DNA of 64,000 bases from the sequence record LC727701.1; one strand, 5' to 3'. The notes under the pieces are model-generated. The model ran no database searches and had not been told where the DNA came from. It saw only the letters and a program-made list of their open reading frames with translations. A program made the position numbers and the translations under genes. Below are positions 635-61,428 of this stretch, one piece after another (the stretch's first letter is position 1; every line of letters begins with the position of its first letter).

Positions 635-721
635 TGGCTGGTAAGGTAGGATTCGAACCTACGGTGGGCTTTCGCCAACGGATTAACAGTCCGCTCCCTG
701 CTGCCACTCGGGTACTTACCA
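635..721 (-). tRNA. tRNA-Asn(GTT), atypical long variable arm (class II, Tyr-like body)
   Basis: rc TGGTAAG..CCCGAGTGGCAGCAGGG A GCGGA-CT-GTT-AA-TCCGT TGGCGAAAGCCCACC GTAGG-TTCGAAT-CCTAC CTTACCA G CCA. Confidence 0.85.
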
Positions 722-730
722 ATGAAATCG

Positions 731-768
731 TAACAGTCACTTGCTCTACCGACTGAGCTATCACGGAA
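731..768 (-). repeat. Exact 38-bp copy of the 5' half of tRNA-Asn (2857-2894)
   Basis: taacagtcacttgctctaccgactgagctatcacggaa is identical at both positions. Confidence 0.95.
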
Positions 769-928
769 GAATTATGGCGATTTTATATTAGAGATGAGTT
801 ACTGACAACCTAATATAGATATGTAATAACTACATATTATTACAATCTGAGTATTATTTATTTCTTGTTATGACATTATGTAAATAACGTGTAGTTAATC
901 TTATTAGAAACTATCAAAGTTACTAATT

Positions 929-1441
929 CTAACTAAAACGAACCACCATTACCTCTGTACCAAAAGTATCTGCAACCCACTGGTTAAATTCTTTATCAGT
1001 GATACCGCGTAGGTTCAGATTAAATGAGGCATTGTCAACAAGAATATATTTTACAGACGATATTAATTCTTCTTTAATATCTTTTTGAATAGATGATTCC
1101 TCAGGTTGATGAATATATTTACGGAGTTGGTGTGTAATTAAACAAGAAACAATATTATCTTTAGCATTCTGGAACTTAGCCAGTACAGCCTGTTTAATTT
1201 TATCTTCTACAAATACAGCTAGACATTCGCCAGGATGACGATTAGCAAACTCAATCAATGCAGTTGTACTACCACATTGCCGACCTACAAATAATCCAAC
1301 AGTCCTGTATTCACGAATAACAATATGACCAATAGAATTAGATCGATAATTAACCCAGTTCTCATTCGTTTTTTGAATTAAAGCATCTAGGATATCTTGG
1401 TACTTTACAATAGTTCTTACAAACTGATTAGAGTTAGTCAT
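929..1441 (-). CDS. Hypothetical protein, degenerate P-loop (GRQCGST) and Walker B-like YILVD
   Basis: 170-aa ORF; motifs by inspection. Confidence 0.7.
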   Translation of the reverse strand: MTNSNQFVRTIVKYQDILDALIQKTNENWVNYRSNSIGHIVIREYRTVGLFVGRQCGSTTALIEFANRHPGECLAVFVEDKIKQAVLAKFQNAKDNIVSCLITHQLRKYIHQPEESSIQKDIKEELISSVKYILVDNASFNLNLRGITDKEFNQWVADTFGTEVMVVRFS

Positions 1442-1725
1442 AATAGACTCCTTTATTACAATGTAGCATAGATTCAGTTTTTTAACTGGAATTAAATGCC
1501 GATTTTGAAAAGGTGATAAAACCTTTTCTCATCTATAAATGAATTTATAATAGTAACAATGAATATAACCAGGGGTGGCAAACCCCTGGCATTTAGACAC
1601 ACTCTATAATAAGTTCTACCACCGAGTGTGTTTAGTGGATAGATTTAAGAATACTTTATTATAGTACTCTTACATAATATCATCGTGCCAGTATAATTAT
1701 CTAAATAGTTATAAATATTATTATT

Positions 1726-2733
1726 TTAATCAATGATTAATGGTGCTAGTTTTACCTGATAGATACCTGATAACAATTGGCTTTTCAACATATATGCTCC
1801 ACCACCAACTGGCATTTTAGATCCACCTACAATGATCATGCTATTATCCGGACCTTTAGCTATAGATGAAATATTAAGGAATCCGATACCTAGTTCAAAT
1901 GGTTCAGCCCATTTCCGGCGCCTAATATTAAAACGTTGTGCAAACATTTTAGTTACACCGCCGACATCAACAGCGTTAAGGTAATTAAAATAGTCCCCAT
2001 CTACATAACCATTACCTTGCCAGATTGTTCCTTTATCAGCAGGTATAATCATCCAAGGTGTTTGCTCCCATATTAAGGTAGTTGCATTATATCGATAAAC
2101 TTCAAGATTAGGTATGTTCTTTGTATTATCCCAACCACCAAAATGGTAAAAGTAACCATTATAAAAGAATAACTGTTGACCTGAACGAGCACCACCTGAA
2201 TAGTCTTGCCCGCTAAGCCAAGACTTACTTGATGGTTTTAATCGCATTGCGTTTACGCCAATTGGGTTAACGCATAGAATAAGATCATTACCATCTGATG
2301 CGGAGGCTGTGCCCCAAAGTGGTACGGGACCACTATATCGCTCAACCCTATTGCCTGTAGCTATATCAAAATGTTGTATAAAGTTAGATGTTCCCGTACC
2401 ACCATTACCAGCCGAGTTCCATCCAGTAATACCGCCATAAACAATAAAGTTATTCTTATGTAATGTCCCAAATCCTAAAGATACCCCTGGTAAGAATGTT
2501 CCAGAAGCAGTTGCACCTATATCGGCAAATGGCGATATGGTAAAACGTCTGAACACAGTTGCAGCTGTTTGTCCTTCAGTATGATGACCAGATCCAACAT
2601 ACAGTGTATTTCCATCCACATATGACATTGTACCAGCTAACGCTACAGGTAGATCACCTAATTTAATAATTTCATTAAATCCAACCAAGGGTAACTCTTC
2701 GCCTATATCTGGTGATAATAGTAATTCAAACAT
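1726..2733 (-). CDS. Kelch-repeat beta-propeller protein
   Basis: Repeated hhhhGG motifs (IVYGG, YHFGGWD, IIVGG) with downstream Y/W. Confidence 0.7.
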   Translation of the reverse strand: MFELLLSPDIGEELPLVGFNEIIKLGDLPVALAGTMSYVDGNTLYVGSGHHTEGQTAATVFRRFTISPFADIGATASGTFLPGVSLGFGTLHKNNFIVYGGITGWNSAGNGGTGTSNFIQHFDIATGNRVERYSGPVPLWGTASASDGNDLILCVNPIGVNAMRLKPSSKSWLSGQDYSGGARSGQQLFFYNGYFYHFGGWDNTKNIPNLEVYRYNATTLIWEQTPWMIIPADKGTIWQGNGYVDGDYFNYLNAVDVGGVTKMFAQRFNIRRRKWAEPFELGIGFLNISSIAKGPDNSMIIVGGSKMPVGGGAYMLKSQLLSGIYQVKLAPLIID

Positions 2734-2787
2734 GAGTGTGCTCTCAAGTAAATCATTTTAATTCATAAGATAACCCATGGCAACATA

Positions 2788-2811
2788 AAAGAGTAGCCGA
2801 AGCTACTCTTT
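2788..2811 (-). terminator. Intrinsic terminator after tRNA-Asn
   Basis: 10-bp stem, TTCG loop on minus strand, T tract. Confidence 0.75.
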
Positions 2812-2817
2812 AGAATA

Positions 2818-2893
<76 letters not shown>

Positions 2894-2899
2894 ATTAAA

Positions 2900-2976
2900 T
2901 GGCGCGCCCAAGGGGACTCGAACCCCTGACCACCCGCGTGACAGGCGGGTATTCTAACCAACTGAACTATGAGCGC
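2900..2976 (-). tRNA. tRNA-Asp(GTC)
   Basis: 77-nt cloverleaf, CCCGC-CT-GTC-AC-GCGGG, encoded CCA. Confidence 0.95.
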
Positions 2977-3028
2977 AAACGTATGGACATGACTTCCTAC
3001 ATAGTATTACATAACCAGTAATATTTTA

Positions 3029-3376
3029 TTACGGGCGATCAGTCCAGTGCTTGAAATAGTTACCATCCTTGGGACGATCGTACTTAGCAAGAATATTTTT
3101 AAGTTCTTCGCCGGACAACTTAATACTATCGCCTACTGGGCTATCCAGTTCAGGGCAAGGTTCAGTTTTACGTGTAATGATTAAATTATCAGTCCCATCT
3201 TTGAAGATAAAGATAAACTGCGTTTCATTAGCACTAATCTTTTTCTTAACGCAATGCTTTACTTCTGGATGTTTCTTGTGGATCGCTACAAAAGATTCAA
3301 CAAGAGTTAGCTTTATAAACTCAGGGCTAATAAATGTGAAATATACAGCGCTCTGCGTTGGGGTTAGATGATCCAT
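3029..3376 (-). CDS. Hypothetical protein in tRNA cluster
   Basis: 115-aa ORF, GGAG RBS, co-oriented with cluster. Confidence 0.65.
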   Translation of the reverse strand: MDHLTPTQSAVYFTFISPEFIKLTLVESFVAIHKKHPEVKHCVKKKISANETQFIFIFKDGTDNLIITRKTEPCPELDSPVGDSIKLSGEELKNILAKYDRPKDGNYFKHWTDRP

Positions 3377-3378
3377 AT

Positions 3379-3684
3379 TTACTCCGTATGTTTGAGATAG
3401 GCTTTAACTGCTTTAAGACCTTTATTAAAGAACATAGCTTCAACATAAGTAATGTTACTTACATCCTCGCCGATAAGTTCCCATTTGATGCAACGTGTAA
3501 CAGCGTTGATTGTAATATCTAATCCGTTTGGGAATAGGGTTACTTCATCGGTCAGGTGAATCCAATCGGGAGCCTTCGCTCCATTACGTAAACGGGGACT
3601 AAAAGTAAGATTATAAAGTGTTTGTAATGGTTGTCTCAATAGTTCTTTTTGTTCTTGATGTTCCATGTATTTTCCTAGAGACAT
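3379..3684 (-). CDS. Hypothetical protein in tRNA cluster
   Basis: 101-aa ORF packed between neighbours. Confidence 0.6.
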   Translation of the reverse strand: MSLGKYMEHQEQKELLRQPLQTLYNLTFSPRLRNGAKAPDWIHLTDEVTLFPNGLDITINAVTRCIKWELIGEDVSNITYVEAMFFNKGLKAVKAYLKHTE

Positions 3685-3896
3685 TTAAAAATATAAATAG
3701 AATGGTTATCTCTTTCGGTTATCTTTAGAGTATTCTCATTTCGAATAACTTCAAGAGACTTGTATTTATGTTCCAGAATATCCAGATGAGAAATACACTG
3801 TTCCCTATTTTCAAATAGGATATTACTTTCATTAGTCGAAATGAAACCAAATAATCCAACTTTGATAGATAATACCAACATTATTACTGTATTCAT
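3675..3896 (-). CDS. Small protein with hydrophobic N-terminus
   Basis: ATG 3896 after GAGG RBS; MNTVIMLVLSIKVGLFGF. Confidence 0.55.
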   Translation of the reverse strand: MNTVIMLVLSIKVGLFGFISTNESNILFENREQCISHLDILEHKYKSLEVIRNENTLKITERDNHSIYIFKCL

Positions 3897-3921
3897 GTTT
3901 TCCTCAATGAGACAGTATAAA

Positions 3922-3942
3922 ACCTCCCTCAAGTGGGAGGCT
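3922..3942 (-). terminator. CCTCCC/GGGAGG hairpin after tRNA
   Basis: Stem-loop followed by T tract on minus strand. Confidence 0.55.
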
Positions 3943-3948
3943 AGTATA

Positions 3949-4025
3949 TGGTGGGCCCAGCAGGACTTGAACCTGCGACCAAGCGATTATGAGTCGCCTG
4001 CTCTAACCAACTGAGCTATAGGCCC
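3949..4025 (-). tRNA. tRNA(CAT), most likely tRNA-Ile2 (lysidine, reads AUA) rather than Met
   Basis: GAGCAGGCGACTCATAATCGCTTGGTCGC matches the enterobacterial ileX-type body as recalled. Confidence 0.85.
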
Positions 4026-4032
4026 TTTTTAT

Positions 4033-4326
4033 TTATTCTGGTAAGAATGTTCCATCTTTTTGACGGACTAATACACCTGACCATTTGAATGTATTTGTAT
4101 CACTAGCAGGGCACTCTCTAATTACATTGGTTCTAAATGTGCCATGTGGATAGGTTACAGTGAATGTAATATGATTATTACAAACATGCAATACAGAAGA
4201 CTTTGCTTCTGTTAGATAGTGTAAGCCTTGAGCTAATTGAATATTAGTTAATTCAGGGTCACTAAGAATAGCGTAAAGAGCTGTTCCTATAATTTGATGT
4301 TCCCATGATATCCATTTATTATCCAT
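4033..4326 (-). CDS. Hypothetical protein in tRNA cluster
   Basis: 97-aa ORF with AGGA RBS. Confidence 0.6.
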   Translation of the reverse strand: MDNKWISWEHQIIGTALYAILSDPELTNIQLAQGLHYLTEAKSSVLHVCNNHITFTVTYPHGTFRTNVIRECPASDTNTFKWSGVLVRQKDGTFLPE

Positions 4327-4347
4327 CCTATTTACCTATTATTAAAA

Positions 4348-4423
4348 TGGTCGGAGTGGGGAGACTCGAACTCCCGACATCCTGCTCCCAAAGCAGGTGC
4401 GCTACCAACTGCGCTACACTCCG
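4348..4423 (-). tRNA. tRNA-Pro(TGG)
   Basis: CCTGC-TT-TGG-GA-GCAGG, encoded CCA. Confidence 0.95.
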
Positions 4424-4432
4424 TATTTAAAT

Positions 4433-4517
4433 TGGTGCCCGAAGTCGGATTCGAACCGACAAGACCGTAGCCGGAAGATTTTAAGTCTTCTGTGTTTACC
4501 AATTTCACCATTCGGGC
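4433..4517 (-). tRNA. tRNA-Leu(TAA)
   Basis: 85 nt, GAAGA-CT-TAA-AA-TCTTC, long variable arm, encoded CCA. Confidence 0.95.
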
Positions 4518-56535: not shown

Positions 56536-58416
56536 ATGGCTGTTAACGAAAACGAAATCGGCACCGTTCAAACTCAAGCTACCGCTCCGGCTCCGCAACC
56601 CACTGCACAACGTCAAGCTCAACGTCCGGCTGGCGCACCTGGGTCCACTACTGGCATTAACCACCTAATGCGCCGTTCTGGCCGGCTAGATGGTTCTGAT
56701 GCTCGTTCAGCAGATGCCCTACAAGTATTCACTAAAGTAAAAGAAGAAGCAATCCGCCATCAGGACCTACCTGATGACTTCGATATCCATCGTTTCGATC
56801 GCGATGCGCAGCAAGTTGGTATGGCTGGTCTACTCATTGTTAAACTAGCTAAAGATATCAATGGTTCCATGAAGGCATTCGTTCGTACTCTAGTACTCGA
56901 TAACCTACCTGGTACTCGCATCCGTCCCCGTACCCACAAAATCAACAATGGTCTAACTGATGACATCATTGAAGAGAAGGTACTACCGCGTGATGTGTTC
57001 ACTGCTCAATACTGGAGCAAGATCGGCGAGTTCCTACGGAACCGTTACAACATCCCTGGTCTAGAAGTACTATCTGCCGGTCCCCGTGCAGTGTATGCTG
57101 ACTTCGACTTCAAAGATGAACTAGCTGTTAAGAACCTACTAGTTGAATCTGTTAATATCTGTGAAGATGCTATTGCGCGTCGTAACAATGAGACTCCGTT
57201 CTCTATTGCGACCCACATCAAAGCAGAAAACGAACAGCTTACCTGCAATCTAGACTACAATGGTATTCCGGTTAAAGATAGCTGTGGTAATCCGATCCGT
57301 TCTGACCTGGTCATCTCCACTAGCCGTGGTAAGAAAACCAACGTACCTGAGAACGAGTTCTATGATACCGATAGCCAGCTAAACCAAGTTAGTCTATTCG
57401 TAGATCTACATTGGACTCCGACCACTGGCCAGCAACAAGGCATGTTTGGCGTAACTCTACCTGGTGCAGTTCTACCTCCGCAGTTCACTCCTTACATCGT
57501 TATTACTGACGTTCGTAAGGCGTCCTGGATCCAAGCATGGACTCTAGAAATGTGGCTGTTCGCGCTTGGTAACGCGTATCGTGCAACTGCATCTCAGGCA
57601 TGGGCTCGTACTCTAATGCCGAAGATCGCTACTAGTAAGATGCGTGATATTGGTGCACTTGGTTATTACTCAGAGCTAGGTAAAGCGATTGAAACTCGCA
57701 CCGAAGCATTCATGGCAGACGACAGCAACTTCGTAATGCTAATGAACAAGATGGTTAACCAGAACCCTGCATTCCAGATCGATGTCGATCCAATGGGAGA
57801 CAACTCAGCTATTGAGCAAGTCGTCCTAGATGCAGCTGGTGGCGTAAACCAAGCTCGTGCAGTTAGTCTGATCTTCCAAGCTCTAACTAACCTATACGGC
57901 ACTGATTTCCGTCAGTTCTATAATCTAGCTGAAGCTGGTCCGATTATCTTTGACAACCATCATGAAGTAGACCTCGGTCACTACACTGATGAGCATGGTG
58001 AACTAAGCGACCGTCGTGATCTCGACGTTCTAGGTGCCATGAACATGTCTGAAGGTAATGACCAAGAGTGGAAGACCTGGTATGCTACTCAGGTAGGTAA
58101 TGACCACATTGTGCGTCGTATGAATAACAGTAAAGGCTTCGACAAGATGTACCTAGGTAACGTTACCTATACTGGTCGTGCTCGTCGTCTAACCTTTAAC
58201 CCGAAATTCATCACCGCAATGGATGCCGCAGCAGCAGCAGCTGGTGTAACTGTAACCATGGAAAACCTAATTACCAACTTCGGTCAACAGCGCTTCGCTG
58301 GTTACACCGGTATGGGTAACATGGCTGTTTCTGGTAGTGCACAAGTTGGCATGGCTGGCAGCATGGGTCAAACTTACGGCGCTCCTTCCTATAATGCACC
58401 GGGTACCTGGTACTAA
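56536..58416 (+). CDS. chmA: Chimallin, major phage nuclear shell protein (gp54-like)
   Basis: 626 aa, disordered N- and C-tails, C-terminal PGTWY, position before nvRNAP beta'N. Confidence 0.92.
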
Positions 58417-58785
58417 TAGGAAATACCTCGGTAGATAGGGATGTTAAATAAGTAACATCCCGATTCTAATACTGCGACCCTGGTTCACTTCGGTGATAAC
58501 GGTTAGGAGTAGGTTCCGTGAAGTAATCGACTAGTGGACTTAGTCTAGGTCGACCTATCACTACACGAGGATGATAGATCACTTAACCGAAAGGAGTTAC
58601 TCAAAAGGTAACGTGTGATCAAAAACTACAATGGATGGTAAATGAGACTAGTGCCGGTATGCTACAAAGAAGAGCGGAGGTTAAGCTTTGTAGATGATGC
58701 TAGGCTCGGGCCAGGCTCCGTTGGTGGTCCATTGTAAAAACTGATATAGCGGCTCCTTCGGGGGCCGCTTATATCTCCTTTTTTT
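58417..58785 (+). ncRNA. Candidate ~365-nt multi-stem RNA (chmA 3' region)
   Basis: No ORF; at least seven hand-paired stems and a loop-loop complement; ends in a strong UUCG terminator. Confidence 0.6.
58743..58785 (+). terminator. Strong terminator
   Basis: GATATAGCGGCTCC-TTCG-GGGGCCGCTTATATC then T9. Confidence 0.85.
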
Positions 58786-58810
58786 GTTAATCGATAAACA
58801 GGAGTTTGGT

Positions 58811-60055
58811 ATGGGTCTTTATGCCAAAGTTGTTGATCATAATGAAGTTCATGATCAATTTACGGGTAAACGAATTTATGCCAATGATTACAATACGAGT
58901 AACTCAGATGAGAAAGAAGAATTTGATAGGCATTTCTATTCTCATTTCCAAGATTCAGAAGCAATTGAAAGTAGTGTAAGCTGTGATTGTCGAGCAATCG
59001 AAGACGCACATAAACTCGGAGTAATCTGTGATATTTGTAATACTCCAGTTGTCAATACTTCTAGCCGCCCTATCGAACCATCAATGTGGGTTCGTACACC
59101 AAAACATGTACGTAGCCTAATTAACCCACGTTTAATCATTATGCTAACCGGATATCTAGTAACTAAAGAATTCGATTTCTTAGCATATCTAACTGATACT
59201 TCTTATCGATACGATGTAGAATCTATTGGTTCTAAGGAAACACGCAGGAAAGTAGATAGGCTACTGCATCGAGGATTTGAAAGAGGATTAAATCACTTCA
59301 TTGATAATTTCAATGAGATCTTCCAATTCCTACTAGATGCAAATATTATTTCTAATAATAAATCCGAATTCGCTCAATTCGTTGCTCAGAATAAAGATAA
59401 GTTATTCCCTAAATATTTACCAGTTCCTTCTAAACTCTGTTTCGTAGCAGAATCAACCACATCTGGTACTTACTTAGATAAACCAATTGAAGCAGCAATT
59501 GATGCTACCTTAACCTTCGCTAGTATTGATGCATCATCTGTACCACTTAGTCCAATTAAAGCTCAGAATAGGACTATGCGAGGACTAAGACTATATGGCC
59601 AGTTCTACGAGATCTACGCAAAATCACGAATTGCTCAAAAGCCTGGTCTTGCTCGGCGTCACATGTTTGGTGCTCGTCTCAACGCTACGGCACGTGCAGT
59701 AATCACTTCTATTAGTGACCCGCATGATTATGATGAACTACATATCCCTTGGGGGGTAGGTTGTCAATTATTAAAGTATCATCTAACCAATAAACTAAAA
59801 GCAAAGTTTAACATGACAACTCGTGAAGCATTCTCATTTGTATATGAGAATGTACTTCAATATAACCAAATCATCGCAGATCTATTTAAAGAGTTAATTG
59901 CAGAAGCAGCCCCTTATAAAGGGATGGGTTGTACTTTTCACCGAAATCCAACCCTTCAACGTGGATCTACACAGCAGTTCTTTATTACCAAAGTAAAAGA
60001 TGACATTAATGATAATTCTATCAGCATGTCAGTATTATGCTTGAAAGCGCCTAAT
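58811..60055 (+). CDS. Non-virion RNA polymerase beta'-like N-terminal subunit, exon 1 (gp55-like)
   Basis: Zn ribbon CDC..CDIC, FGAR..ARAVI, HRNPTL, ends ..KAPN; ATG 58811 after AGGAG. Confidence 0.9.
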
Positions 60056-61428
60056 CGGATAAGCAAATAACTAAATAAGGGTAAAAACAATGGAACAAAA
60101 CGGAGTAGTGTCCGTCTTTGATCCGGCTTCATTTAAAATTGAATGGCGAGATATTCCTGGATACTCAGCATATGAAGCTAGTAACTTAGGAACAATCCGT
60201 CATAAGCGGTTAAATAGAATATGTAAGTTATACAAAGTACCTACCTCAACTGGTTCATATCTGAAGCTGGGTGCAAAAAATGATAATGGCAGAAGTAATT
60301 CTACATTATCACATATTCTAATTTGTACCGCATTCCATGGTCCATCACCTGGACCAAATTATGAAGTCAATCATAAAGACGGTAACAAACATAATAACTT
60401 ACCTTTTAATTTGGAGTGGATGACTCGTGGTGAAAACATTGAGCATGCTTACAAAAATGGATTAAGAAAAGAAAATAGACGGGTAATTGCAACTGATGTT
60501 ACCACTGGTGAAAAGACTACTTATTACTCGATGAATGAACTTGCTCGGGCATTAGGAGTTAATAAAAATACGGTTTGGGTTATTATACGTGATCATAAGA
60601 CTAAGCCGTATAGAAATAGATTCACATTTGAATTTATTACCGGTGAGACTAAGATTGCTGATCGAGATAGTACCAAGACAGTTTATGTTTTAGACTATAA
60701 GACTAAGACATTACATGTGTTTCATAACTTAGCAGAAATGGAACTTGCACTAGGTACTAAACGTAATAAAGCCTATTACCATCTAGTTAGAGGTAGTAAG
60801 GAAATCATGGATGGTTTGGTATTCTCATATACCGCTAATCCTGAAGATTTCCCTAAATATACTCAGAAAGAAATTGAAGCCTCATTTGGAAAACCTAGTA
60901 ATGGAAAAGGTACTCCAATTGAAGTAACCGACACCATCTTGAACACTACCAAAGTGTATCCGAGTATTCCACACTTTGCAAGAGATGTCGGTATTAAGCA
61001 TCCGAATACTGTTCGAAGAGCAATCTTTGAAAAGAATGGGGTGCTTGATAAATACCTTATTAAGTTAATCAAATCTAGTTCCCCCAATGAGTAATCGTTG
61101 GGTTGAGTTCTCTCTAATTGCTGGGATATCCTGTTAAACTAATCTACCACTGCGAGTCGAAAGACAAAGCCAAGGTTTGAAAAAGATTAGGTAGGGCCAA
61201 TCAGCAGCCAAGCTCCGTAACATTCCATTTAGGAATAGGAGAAGGTTCAACGACTATTACGGTATCAGGTGCACCGGTCCTAGAAATAGGATGTAGGGTC
61301 AAGTGACTCGAAATGGGAGACACCCCACTCCGAAAGGAAGGGTGAAGATATAGTCTGGTCTTCTAGCGAGAGCTAGAGCTGCACGTAATGGTGCGGGTAT
61401 CAATTAACGACTGATACTGAACAATACG
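60056..61428 (+). mobile_element. Group I intron with embedded HNH gene
   Basis: Exon ends in U, intron ends in G; P 61116, Q AATCAGCAGC 61199, R GTTCAACGACTA 61245, S AAGATATAGTCT 61345; splicing restores N|ADFDGD in frame. Confidence 0.93.
60090..61094 (+). CDS. Intron-encoded HNH homing endonuclease (NUMOD4-HNH-3x NUMOD1/IENR1-like)
   Basis: EWRDIPGYSAYEASNLG; VNHKDGNKHNNLPFNLEW; three helix-turn-helix-like C-terminal repeats. Confidence 0.9.
   Translation: MEQNGVVSVFDPASFKIEWRDIPGYSAYEASNLGTIRHKRLNRICKLYKVPTSTGSYLKLGAKNDNGRSNSTLSHILICTAFHGPSPGPNYEVNHKDGNKHNNLPFNLEWMTRGENIEHAYKNGLRKENRRVIATDVTTGEKTTYYSMNELARALGVNKNTVWVIIRDHKTKPYRNRFTFEFITGETKIADRDSTKTVYVLDYKTKTLHVFHNLAEMELALGTKRNKAYYHLVRGSKEIMDGLVFSYTANPEDFPKYTQKEIEASFGKPSNGKGTPIEVTDTILNTTKVYPSIPHFARDVGIKHPNTVRRAIFEKNGVLDKYLIKLIKSSSPNE

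Follow-up and report, generated by a model that had tools for sequence, protein, structure and literature searches.

A structured, modular RNA predicted at the tail of the chmA transcript in phiKZ-related jumbo phages

What occupies the 394 nt between the stop codon of chmA, the gene of the phage nuclear shell protein, and the start of the next gene in phiKZ-like phages, and what might it do there? The question was addressed in a 64,000-nt stretch of sequence record LC727701.1 (the window), which represents a phiKZ-like phage: a 3-kb query from it matched Pseudomonas phage NK1 at 100% identity and phiKZ at 98.5%. Here, chmA (chimallin, PHIKZ054 homologue; 56536-58416, + strand) is a complete ORF encoding a protein with 99 to 100% identity to the nuclear shell protein of the phiKZ group, and a second in-frame stop, TAG, follows at 58417-58419. 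The next gene encodes an nvRNAP beta-type subunit (PHIKZ055 homologue; 58811-60070, + strand) and has its ATG at 58811. Between the two lies an intrinsic terminator (58743-58785, + strand), composed of a 14-bp stem (58743-58756/58761-58775) with a UUCG loop, followed by UCC and U7 (58779-58785). This hairpin is kept after chmA in all relatives, including those devoid of the RNA described below. A simple terminator scan, with a stated limit of 0 to 2 nt between stem and T run, missed this hairpin; the likely reason is the distance of 3 nt from the stem to the start of the T run. The early-promoter-like motif TATATTAC is found upstream of chmA. In published passages on phiKZ transcription, early and middle promoters are reported for PHIKZ054 and chmA is included in a six-gene operon (PMC8244752), and chmA is placed in many transcription units (PMC8244752; PMC10914365). 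Since the RNA lies upstream of the chmA terminator, it should be co-transcribed with chmA. Elsewhere in the window, six tRNA genes are clustered at 638-4517 on the - strand (Rfam tRNA, 54 to 73 bits).

The initial annotation described the stretch between the chmA stop and its terminator as ORF-free and as the site of a large multi-domain RNA, and both descriptions hold. The + strand of 58417-58785 folds with a minimum free energy of -124.3 kcal/mol (z = -4.1), a value matched by none of 100 shuffled sequences and better by 21 kcal/mol than that of the - strand, which reaches only -103. As G-U pairs are numerous, the RNA was assigned to the + strand, which is that of chmA. A search for a conserved ORF in 58417-58785 returned none, and the coordinates of the ORF-free stretch proved right. 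The ATG of a 31-aa ORF on the + strand (58642-58737) occurs only in NK1, and a 38-aa ORF on the - strand is broken in relatives by a 2-nt indel. A coding role was rejected on these grounds, the ORFs being either private to single lineages or interrupted by indels. GenBank "hypothetical proteins" extend across the RNA and terminator in loci L007 (574-681 and 827-1015) and L008 (574-681 and 826-1014); such small annotated proteins, which overlap chmA or the polymerase gene, are probably mis-calls. On the sequence evidence, in which the fold outperforms shuffled controls and the stems covary among relatives, positions 58420-58740 are a genuine, selected, structured RNA of ~330 nt that would form the tail of the chmA transcript.

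As modelled, this RNA is a string of self-contained modules, namely a 5' domain, hairpin D, and a 3' core, separated by short A-rich linkers at 58571-58576 and 58621-58628 and closed by the terminator, all on the + strand. The multi-branched 5' domain (58426-58570) is closed by helix P1, CCUCG/CGAGG (58426-58430/58566-58570), which encloses three arms. Hairpin A is formed by 58432-58435/58465-58468 and 58438-58446/58453-58461 (GGGAUGUUA/UAACAUCCC), hairpin B by 58470-58479/58501-58511 with the tip UCAC-UUCG-GUGA at 58485-58496, and hairpin C by 58518-58523/58555-58561 and 58527-58539/58543-58553 (UCGACUAG/CUAGGUCGA). In hairpin D (58577-58620), which is likewise three-way but small, the stem GAUCAC/GUGAUC (58577-58582/58615-58620) encloses an unpaired UUAA, the mini-hairpin CC-GAAA-GG (58587-58594), and the hairpin GUUACU/GGUAAC (58596-58612). 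The 3' core is a three-way junction of ~106 nt (58629-58734). Its 8-bp closing helix, CAAUGGAU/GUCCAUUG (58629-58636/58727-58734), encloses the CUACAAAG/CUUUGUAG arm and leads into the junction GGUAAAU (58637-58643). The long arm of ~20 bp (about 22) is made up of 58644-58653/58698-58707 and 58660-58669/58686-58696, with an asymmetric 6-nt internal loop (58654-58659) and a 16-nt apical loop (58670-58685). The short hairpin consists of 5 bp, GCCAG/UUGGU (58710-58714/58721-58725), and the loop GCUCCG. In NK1, the core arm (58642-58660, 58695-58706) differs at clustered positions from that of all other phiKZ-like phages, with GAGAC/GGCUC in place of GGUCC/GGAUC and GGUAUG in place of AGAGCG. These changes are mostly compensatory; there is one A-G mismatch, and one change creates the private ATG of the 31-aa ORF mentioned above.

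Two pairs of complementary loop segments suggest contacts between these elements. CGGAG in the apical loop (58675-58679) and CUCCG in the loop of the short hairpin (58716-58720) are perfect complements and invariant in all 12 distinct sequences. As neither partner varies, covariation is impossible at these positions, and we infer a candidate kissing contact in which the long arm probably bends back, so that its apical loop would reach the short hairpin. The second candidate links UUAA(C) of hairpin D (58583-58587) with (G)UUAA of the apical loop (58680-58684), two segments that are invariant wherever both sides exist. Among the sequences without hairpin D, L047 has an altered apical loop and L071 has kept the loop, and the long-range contact is at most weakly suggested.

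Support for the helices comes from comparison of relatives. RNAalifold of ten sequences yielded 106 pairs, 17 of them with compensatory changes, and two covariance models were built: R2 spans the 5' domain (58420-58576), and R1 combines hairpin D with the core (58571-58741). Across model alignments of 12 to 14 sequences, which represent a small family of about four lineages and, being fitted by covariance model, lean towards that model, 96 to 99% of cells were paired, compared with 28 to 50% in controls with slid partners, and 25 to 28 pairs were changed on both sides; none of 500 shuffles reached the observed values. Changes on both sides were seen in 18 of the 28 pairs of the core helices (helices 5 to 7 of the alignment), and five to six of the six pairs in the outer stem of hairpin D carry compensatory changes across relatives (PhiPA3, L057). 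The 5' domain is less variable. In R2, 99.2% of cells were paired (30 to 44% with partners slid), double changes affected five pairs, one each in P1, the outer and inner parts of hairpin A, and the outer and inner parts of hairpin C, and no pair was broken between phiKZ and Pawinskivirus types. Compensatory substitutions beyond controls, the general hallmark of a structured functional RNA, are therefore present, and the comparison of chmA 3' regions revealed conservation and covariation rather than their absence.

Most of the stems that had been proposed by hand in the initial annotation are borne out by these data. Covariation confirms GGGAUGUUA/UAACAUCCC and UCGACUAG/CUAGGUCGA, and equally backs GAUCAC/GUGAUC with the enclosed GUUAC/GUAAC and the long-range CAAUGGAU/GUCCAUUG with the enclosed CUACAAAG/CUUUGUAG; the UUCG hairpin (58485-58496) is present but invariant. 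Two proposals have to be revised. The stem CTATCA/TGATAG is not kept in PA1C-type sequences, and UCAC (58558-58561) pairs instead with GUGA (58517-58520), where a compensatory change was seen. CCTCG/CGAGG, taken for a tertiary contact, is an ordinary long-range helix (P1), in which U-A is replaced by C-G in Pawinskivirus. The other proposed loop complements, CGGAG/CUCCG and CUUAACC/GGUUAAG (the latter containing UUAA(C)/(G)UUAA), do exist and never vary, and covariation is neutral on whether they touch.

The RNA is better conserved than the genes that flank it. ChmA of the phiKZ type shares 48 to 49% identity with that of Pawinskivirus and PhiPA3 and 43 to 45% with that of L047 and L057. Between NK1 and PA1C, the RNA is 82 to 89% identical, chmA 45 to 68%, and the polymerase gene 57 to 68% (nucleotide identity in 100-nt windows), and at this resolution the edges of the identity island coincide approximately with the chmA stop and a point just past the terminator. 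Nowhere else in the ~6.4-kb chmA-nvRNAP locus is conservation relative to PA1C as high as in the RNA. Recent exchange in the common host P. aeruginosa could account in part for the high identity of the RNA in phiKZ-like and Pawinskivirus phages. Between phiKZ-type and L047-type cores, 19 to 22 of 33 pairs have changed, of which 16 to 19 are still paired, 13 to 16 of them via double changes; only 5 to 7 of 44 unpaired columns differ, and the apical-loop segment GAGCGGAGG as well as the entire short hairpin are identical in every copy. Such a pattern, with loops held constant on stems that drift, marks an RNA as recognised by some partner.

Among jumbo phages, the distribution of the RNA is patchy. 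About 49 phiKZ-like records contain the same stretch at 94.5 to 100% identity, and in phiKZ itself it corresponds to AF399011 47529-47900. In the Pawinskivirus phages PA1C, PS119XW, HPP-Temi, HHBS36_1, and BRkr, identity is about 85%; phiHQ carries half of the RNA, and PhiPA3 has recognisable pieces of it. R1 detected the core, which has the widest distribution of the three modules, in phiKZ-like phages, Pawinskivirus, phiHQ, and the metagenomic jumbo phages L047, L057, and L071. In the latter three, the core is situated directly after chmA, L071 being without a tblastn match to chmA. All copies of the type seen in the window (type A) are on the chmA strand, between stop and terminator. Exact-pattern scans of IMG/VR, JGI metagenomes, and GTDB genomes uncovered no type-A copy away from chmA, the remaining matches being chance occurrences inside coding regions. 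R1 and R2 identified one copy in the 64-kb window and the pattern scans one per genome, without repeats. By tblastn, the order chmA to nvRNAP was present at 35 of 37 loci queried, the exceptions being one locus cut at a contig end and L071, and the gap between the two genes ranged from 78 to 874 nt. A gap of 78 to 105 nt holding the terminator only was found in D6, Noxifer, L048, L054, L055, L060, L061, L064, Goslar, and RAY. With terminator-only gaps in at least 10 lineages, the RNA does not occur in all or most nucleus-forming phages, and this distribution marks it as accessory, present in some jumbo phages, and not as a general part of nucleus building. The gap was also considered as a hotspot for homing endonucleases, and this was rejected, as the gap ORFs of 201phi2-1, Phabio, and Viktualia are without HNH/GIY-YIG or PHROG matches. 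One of these ORFs, 201phi2-1 gp106 (L012 3984-4550), resembles the PhiKZ major capsid protein family PF25620 at a score below threshold (E = 3e-5, 22.8 bits, cutoff 27).

Comparison of close relatives suggests that the modules are exchanged as units. PA1C and phiHQ have identical ChmA, and phiHQ keeps hairpin D and the core, whereas its 5' domain has been swapped, exactly at the domain boundary, for a module of another type (type B). L047 possesses the core only, and L057 a D-like element, a variant of hairpin D, together with the core. PhiPA3 retains closing helix P1 and hairpins A and D, has its 5' domain expanded by an insertion of ~130 nt, and is without the core loops; Phabio contains a weak look-alike of hairpin D. 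In the ChmA tree, Psa21, D6, L042, L045, L046, L047, and L057 form a tight clade, within which Psa21 has 370 nt of type B, D6 has nothing, L047 and L057 have the elements just described, and L042, L045, and L046 have other small junction-type modules. These last three are IMG/VR contigs with ChmA nearly identical to that of D6 and hairpin modules in the chmA 3' UTR (4259-4400 in L042); the modules of L042 and L046 seem to be of one type, L045 has a hairpin-A-like UAGAUAG...UCUA element, and none of the three had a match in the phage collection.

Type B is a second, unrelated structured RNA, found in Psa21 (L011 3756-4140) and phiHQ (L002 2694-3000). Its second half occurs also in Ralstonia phage RP13 (L119 2470-2570), in a non-coding gap just upstream of tRNA-Leu. 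Across Psa21, phiHQ, and RP13, the type-B stems show compensatory changes and ACGGU/ACCGU is a conserved pseudoknot candidate; Rfam yielded no match for it. Recurrence of this module beside the RP13 tRNA-Leu gene implies that such modules can work outside chmA. In RP13, 2.4 kb upstream of the type-B-like module, a match to the Twister-sister ribozyme (RF02681) was found at L119 62-137 (LC554890.1, about 139392-139467), with 36 bits against a threshold of 34.

The type-A RNA itself does not match a known family. At gathering thresholds, the Rfam scan of the 64-kb window assigned no family to 58417-58785; a permissive Rfam 15 scan of the region gave at best 13 to 18 bits against thresholds of 42 to 90 (E = 1.2 to 8.4), and ten related loci produced no match at E up to 0.5. 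The families covered include tRNA, tmRNA, RNase P, SRP, 6S, riboswitches, ribozymes, GOLLD/ROOL/OLE/HEARO/raiA, and EAR, in agreement with the first impression that this is not tmRNA, RNase P, or SRP. A group I intron was rejected as well, as RF00028 remained unmatched in 58300-58900 at E up to 10 in the same search that detected one at 61057-61378. An intron interrupting chmA was likewise discarded, with ChmA complete at Tyr626 and a terminator and a new gene following. This terminal Tyr is invariant in nine homologues, among them phages without the RNA, which means that there is no downstream exon and nothing to splice. The group I intron at 61057-61378 (+ strand; RF00028, 75.6 bits, full-length model) lies 2.3 kb downstream, its start being slightly ahead of the stop codon of ORF 60090-61094, two genes past chmA; in Goslar, a group I intron is annotated directly after the nvRNAP beta gene.

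For the function of the RNA, we tentatively favour a role in trans, to which we give somewhat less than an even chance: autonomous modules carried on the chmA transcript would survive as a 3'-UTR-derived RNA and bind a specific partner. The modules may hitch-hike on chmA as the earliest and most abundant phage mRNA, and their compact folds, together with the terminator hairpin, would let them outlast the coding part. The invariant unpaired nucleotides might then bind a specific phage or host protein or RNA, in an accessory role that would not be required for nucleus assembly itself. Processing, stability, and partner are all things that we infer here. An RsmA sponge was rejected, since inspection of the fold places the GGA motifs in helices and not in hairpin loops.

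All type-A copies adjoin chmA, so that a cis role would fit too, and a lineage-specific effect of the RNA on ChmA output is possible. The rival that survives best, although we consider it unlikely, is that the RNA acts solely in cis, stabilising chmA mRNA from its 3' end or serving as its retro-regulator. Either the folds and long irregular duplexes would shield the message from 3'-to-5' decay, or RNase III/RNase E processing signals would set ChmA output, perhaps differently on terminated and read-through transcripts. Retro-regulation in cis has precedents in lambda sib and the RNase III sites of T7. The position of every type-A copy between chmA stop and terminator agrees with such a role, as do the core arm, a ~20-bp helix with an asymmetric internal loop, and the reported transcription of chmA from an early and a middle promoter and in many units (PMC8244752; PMC10914365). 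However, D6, Noxifer, Goslar, and RAY manage with only the terminator after chmA, the invariance of the loops and short hairpin is better explained by sequence-specific recognition than by a need for bulk stability, and a sister module adjoins a tRNA gene instead of chmA.

A bolder version of action in trans, which we regard as distinctly unlikely, would make the chmA 3' UTR a landing pad for interchangeable trans-acting RNA payloads that serve as decoys or inhibitors of host RNA-directed defences or RNA machinery. As the first and strongest phage transcript, chmA mRNA would supply such compact, aptamer-like modules in large amounts. If true, such payloads would target the one layer from which a nucleus-shielded phage cannot hide, and the turnover of modules in near-identical phages would be the RNA counterpart of anti-defence gene islands.

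Control in cis of terminator read-through into the nvRNAP genes, either by a riboswitch-like aptamer or by a put/EAR-like, polymerase-modifying element, appears improbable. Aptamers are commonly built as a three-way junction with kissing loops, only 8 nt separate the core from the terminator, and the terminator is followed by the essential nvRNAP beta gene; the reported six-gene operon including chmA (PMC8244752) would also suit this mode of control. Nevertheless, by inspection the complementarity between the core and the 5' strand of the terminator amounts to only about 4 nt (GGAG/CUCC), the closing helix is clear of the terminator, relatives possess this terminator on its own, and the Rfam searches gave no riboswitch or antitermination match.

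It is very improbable that the tract has no function of its own, as a decaying or selfish insertion (an intron or mobile-element remnant) or a young exchanged tract. Its patchy distribution, its presence or absence among near-identical phages, the domain-exact swaps, and the group I intron 2.3 kb downstream could be read in this way. Yet its stems covary and its loops are fixed over lineages with 43 to 49% ChmA identity, a pattern that neutral decay does not yield; moreover, RF00028 is unmatched at E up to 10, the last residue of ChmA is the invariant Tyr, and the window holds no repeats or extra copies. Least probable of all is the function originally proposed, in which the RNA would serve chmA mRNA as a scaffold or in its localisation or export, or would nucleate or decorate the shell: physical linkage to chmA in all type-A copies and the early promoter motif TATATTAC, which predicts early, abundant expression (PMC8244752), speak for it. 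The main points against it are that many nucleus-forming phages of the same gene order lack the RNA and that modules are swapped between phages with identical ChmA; a sister module located away from chmA also weakens it, and no comparative signal ties the RNA to the shell.

Phage phiKZ is a model nucleus-forming phage and a phage-therapy candidate. The RNA belongs to this heavily studied phage, yet term searches of main texts, covering the phiKZ studies by dRNA-seq, ONT-cappable-seq, Grad-seq, and antisense oligomers as well as the transcriptome study of 201phi2-1, returned no mention of it. At ~330 nt, with a pseudoknot-capable core, invariant loops, and covariation, it is a good target for structure and partner work, and its modular make-up, prone to swaps, suggests a trade in folded RNA domains among jumbo phages, comparable to that in accessory genes. 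Action of the modules in trans, on machinery of the host or the phage, is the reading that we favour and would open an RNA layer of jumbo-phage biology; action in cis would instead reveal what sets the level of the key shell protein.

How does this RNA compare with known systems? It resembles a group I intron in size, multi-helix organisation, and long-range pairings; however, its covarying helices span a candidate pseudoknot, which a P3-P7 core would forbid. GOLLD and ROOL are large, ornate noncoding RNAs that are often carried by phages. The RNA of the window is similarly large, highly structured, and phage-borne, but is smaller than these, modular, and without an Rfam model match, and its type-A modules occur only in the chmA 3' UTR among the phiKZ-related phages sampled. 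T4 species 1 and 2 are stable structured RNAs within a tRNA cluster. By description, the RP13 sister module beside tRNA-Leu can be likened to them, whereas the RNA of the window lies outside the tRNA cluster at 638-4517. In purine-riboswitch-type aptamers, a three-way junction is combined with kissing loops. The core shares with this type a closing helix, two arms, complementary invariant loops, and unpaired nucleotides more conserved than the stems, and departs from it in its arms (about 22 versus 5 bp), its 3'-UTR site, and its lack of an overlapping expression platform.

The closest parallels are phage noncoding RNAs derived from 3' UTRs, such as those described in passages on phiKZ 3'UTR_PHIKZ298 (PMC8545117) and on ncRNA1 and ncRNA2 of PAK_P3 (PMC10914365). 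Like these RNAs of Pseudomonas phages, the RNA of the window extends from stop to terminator, where an own promoter is not expected; it lies downstream of the stop codon and shares the terminator of the mRNA, also in relatives, as does a 3'-UTR-derived small RNA. The known examples are simple stem-loops of 90 to 210 nt, whereas the present RNA, as predicted from sequence, is multi-domain at ~330 nt, with a pseudoknot-capable core and deep covariation. By Rfam and literature term searches, it adds a new family to the familiar kind of structured RNAs borne in 3' UTRs, and is unusual for that kind in its size, modularity, and conservation.
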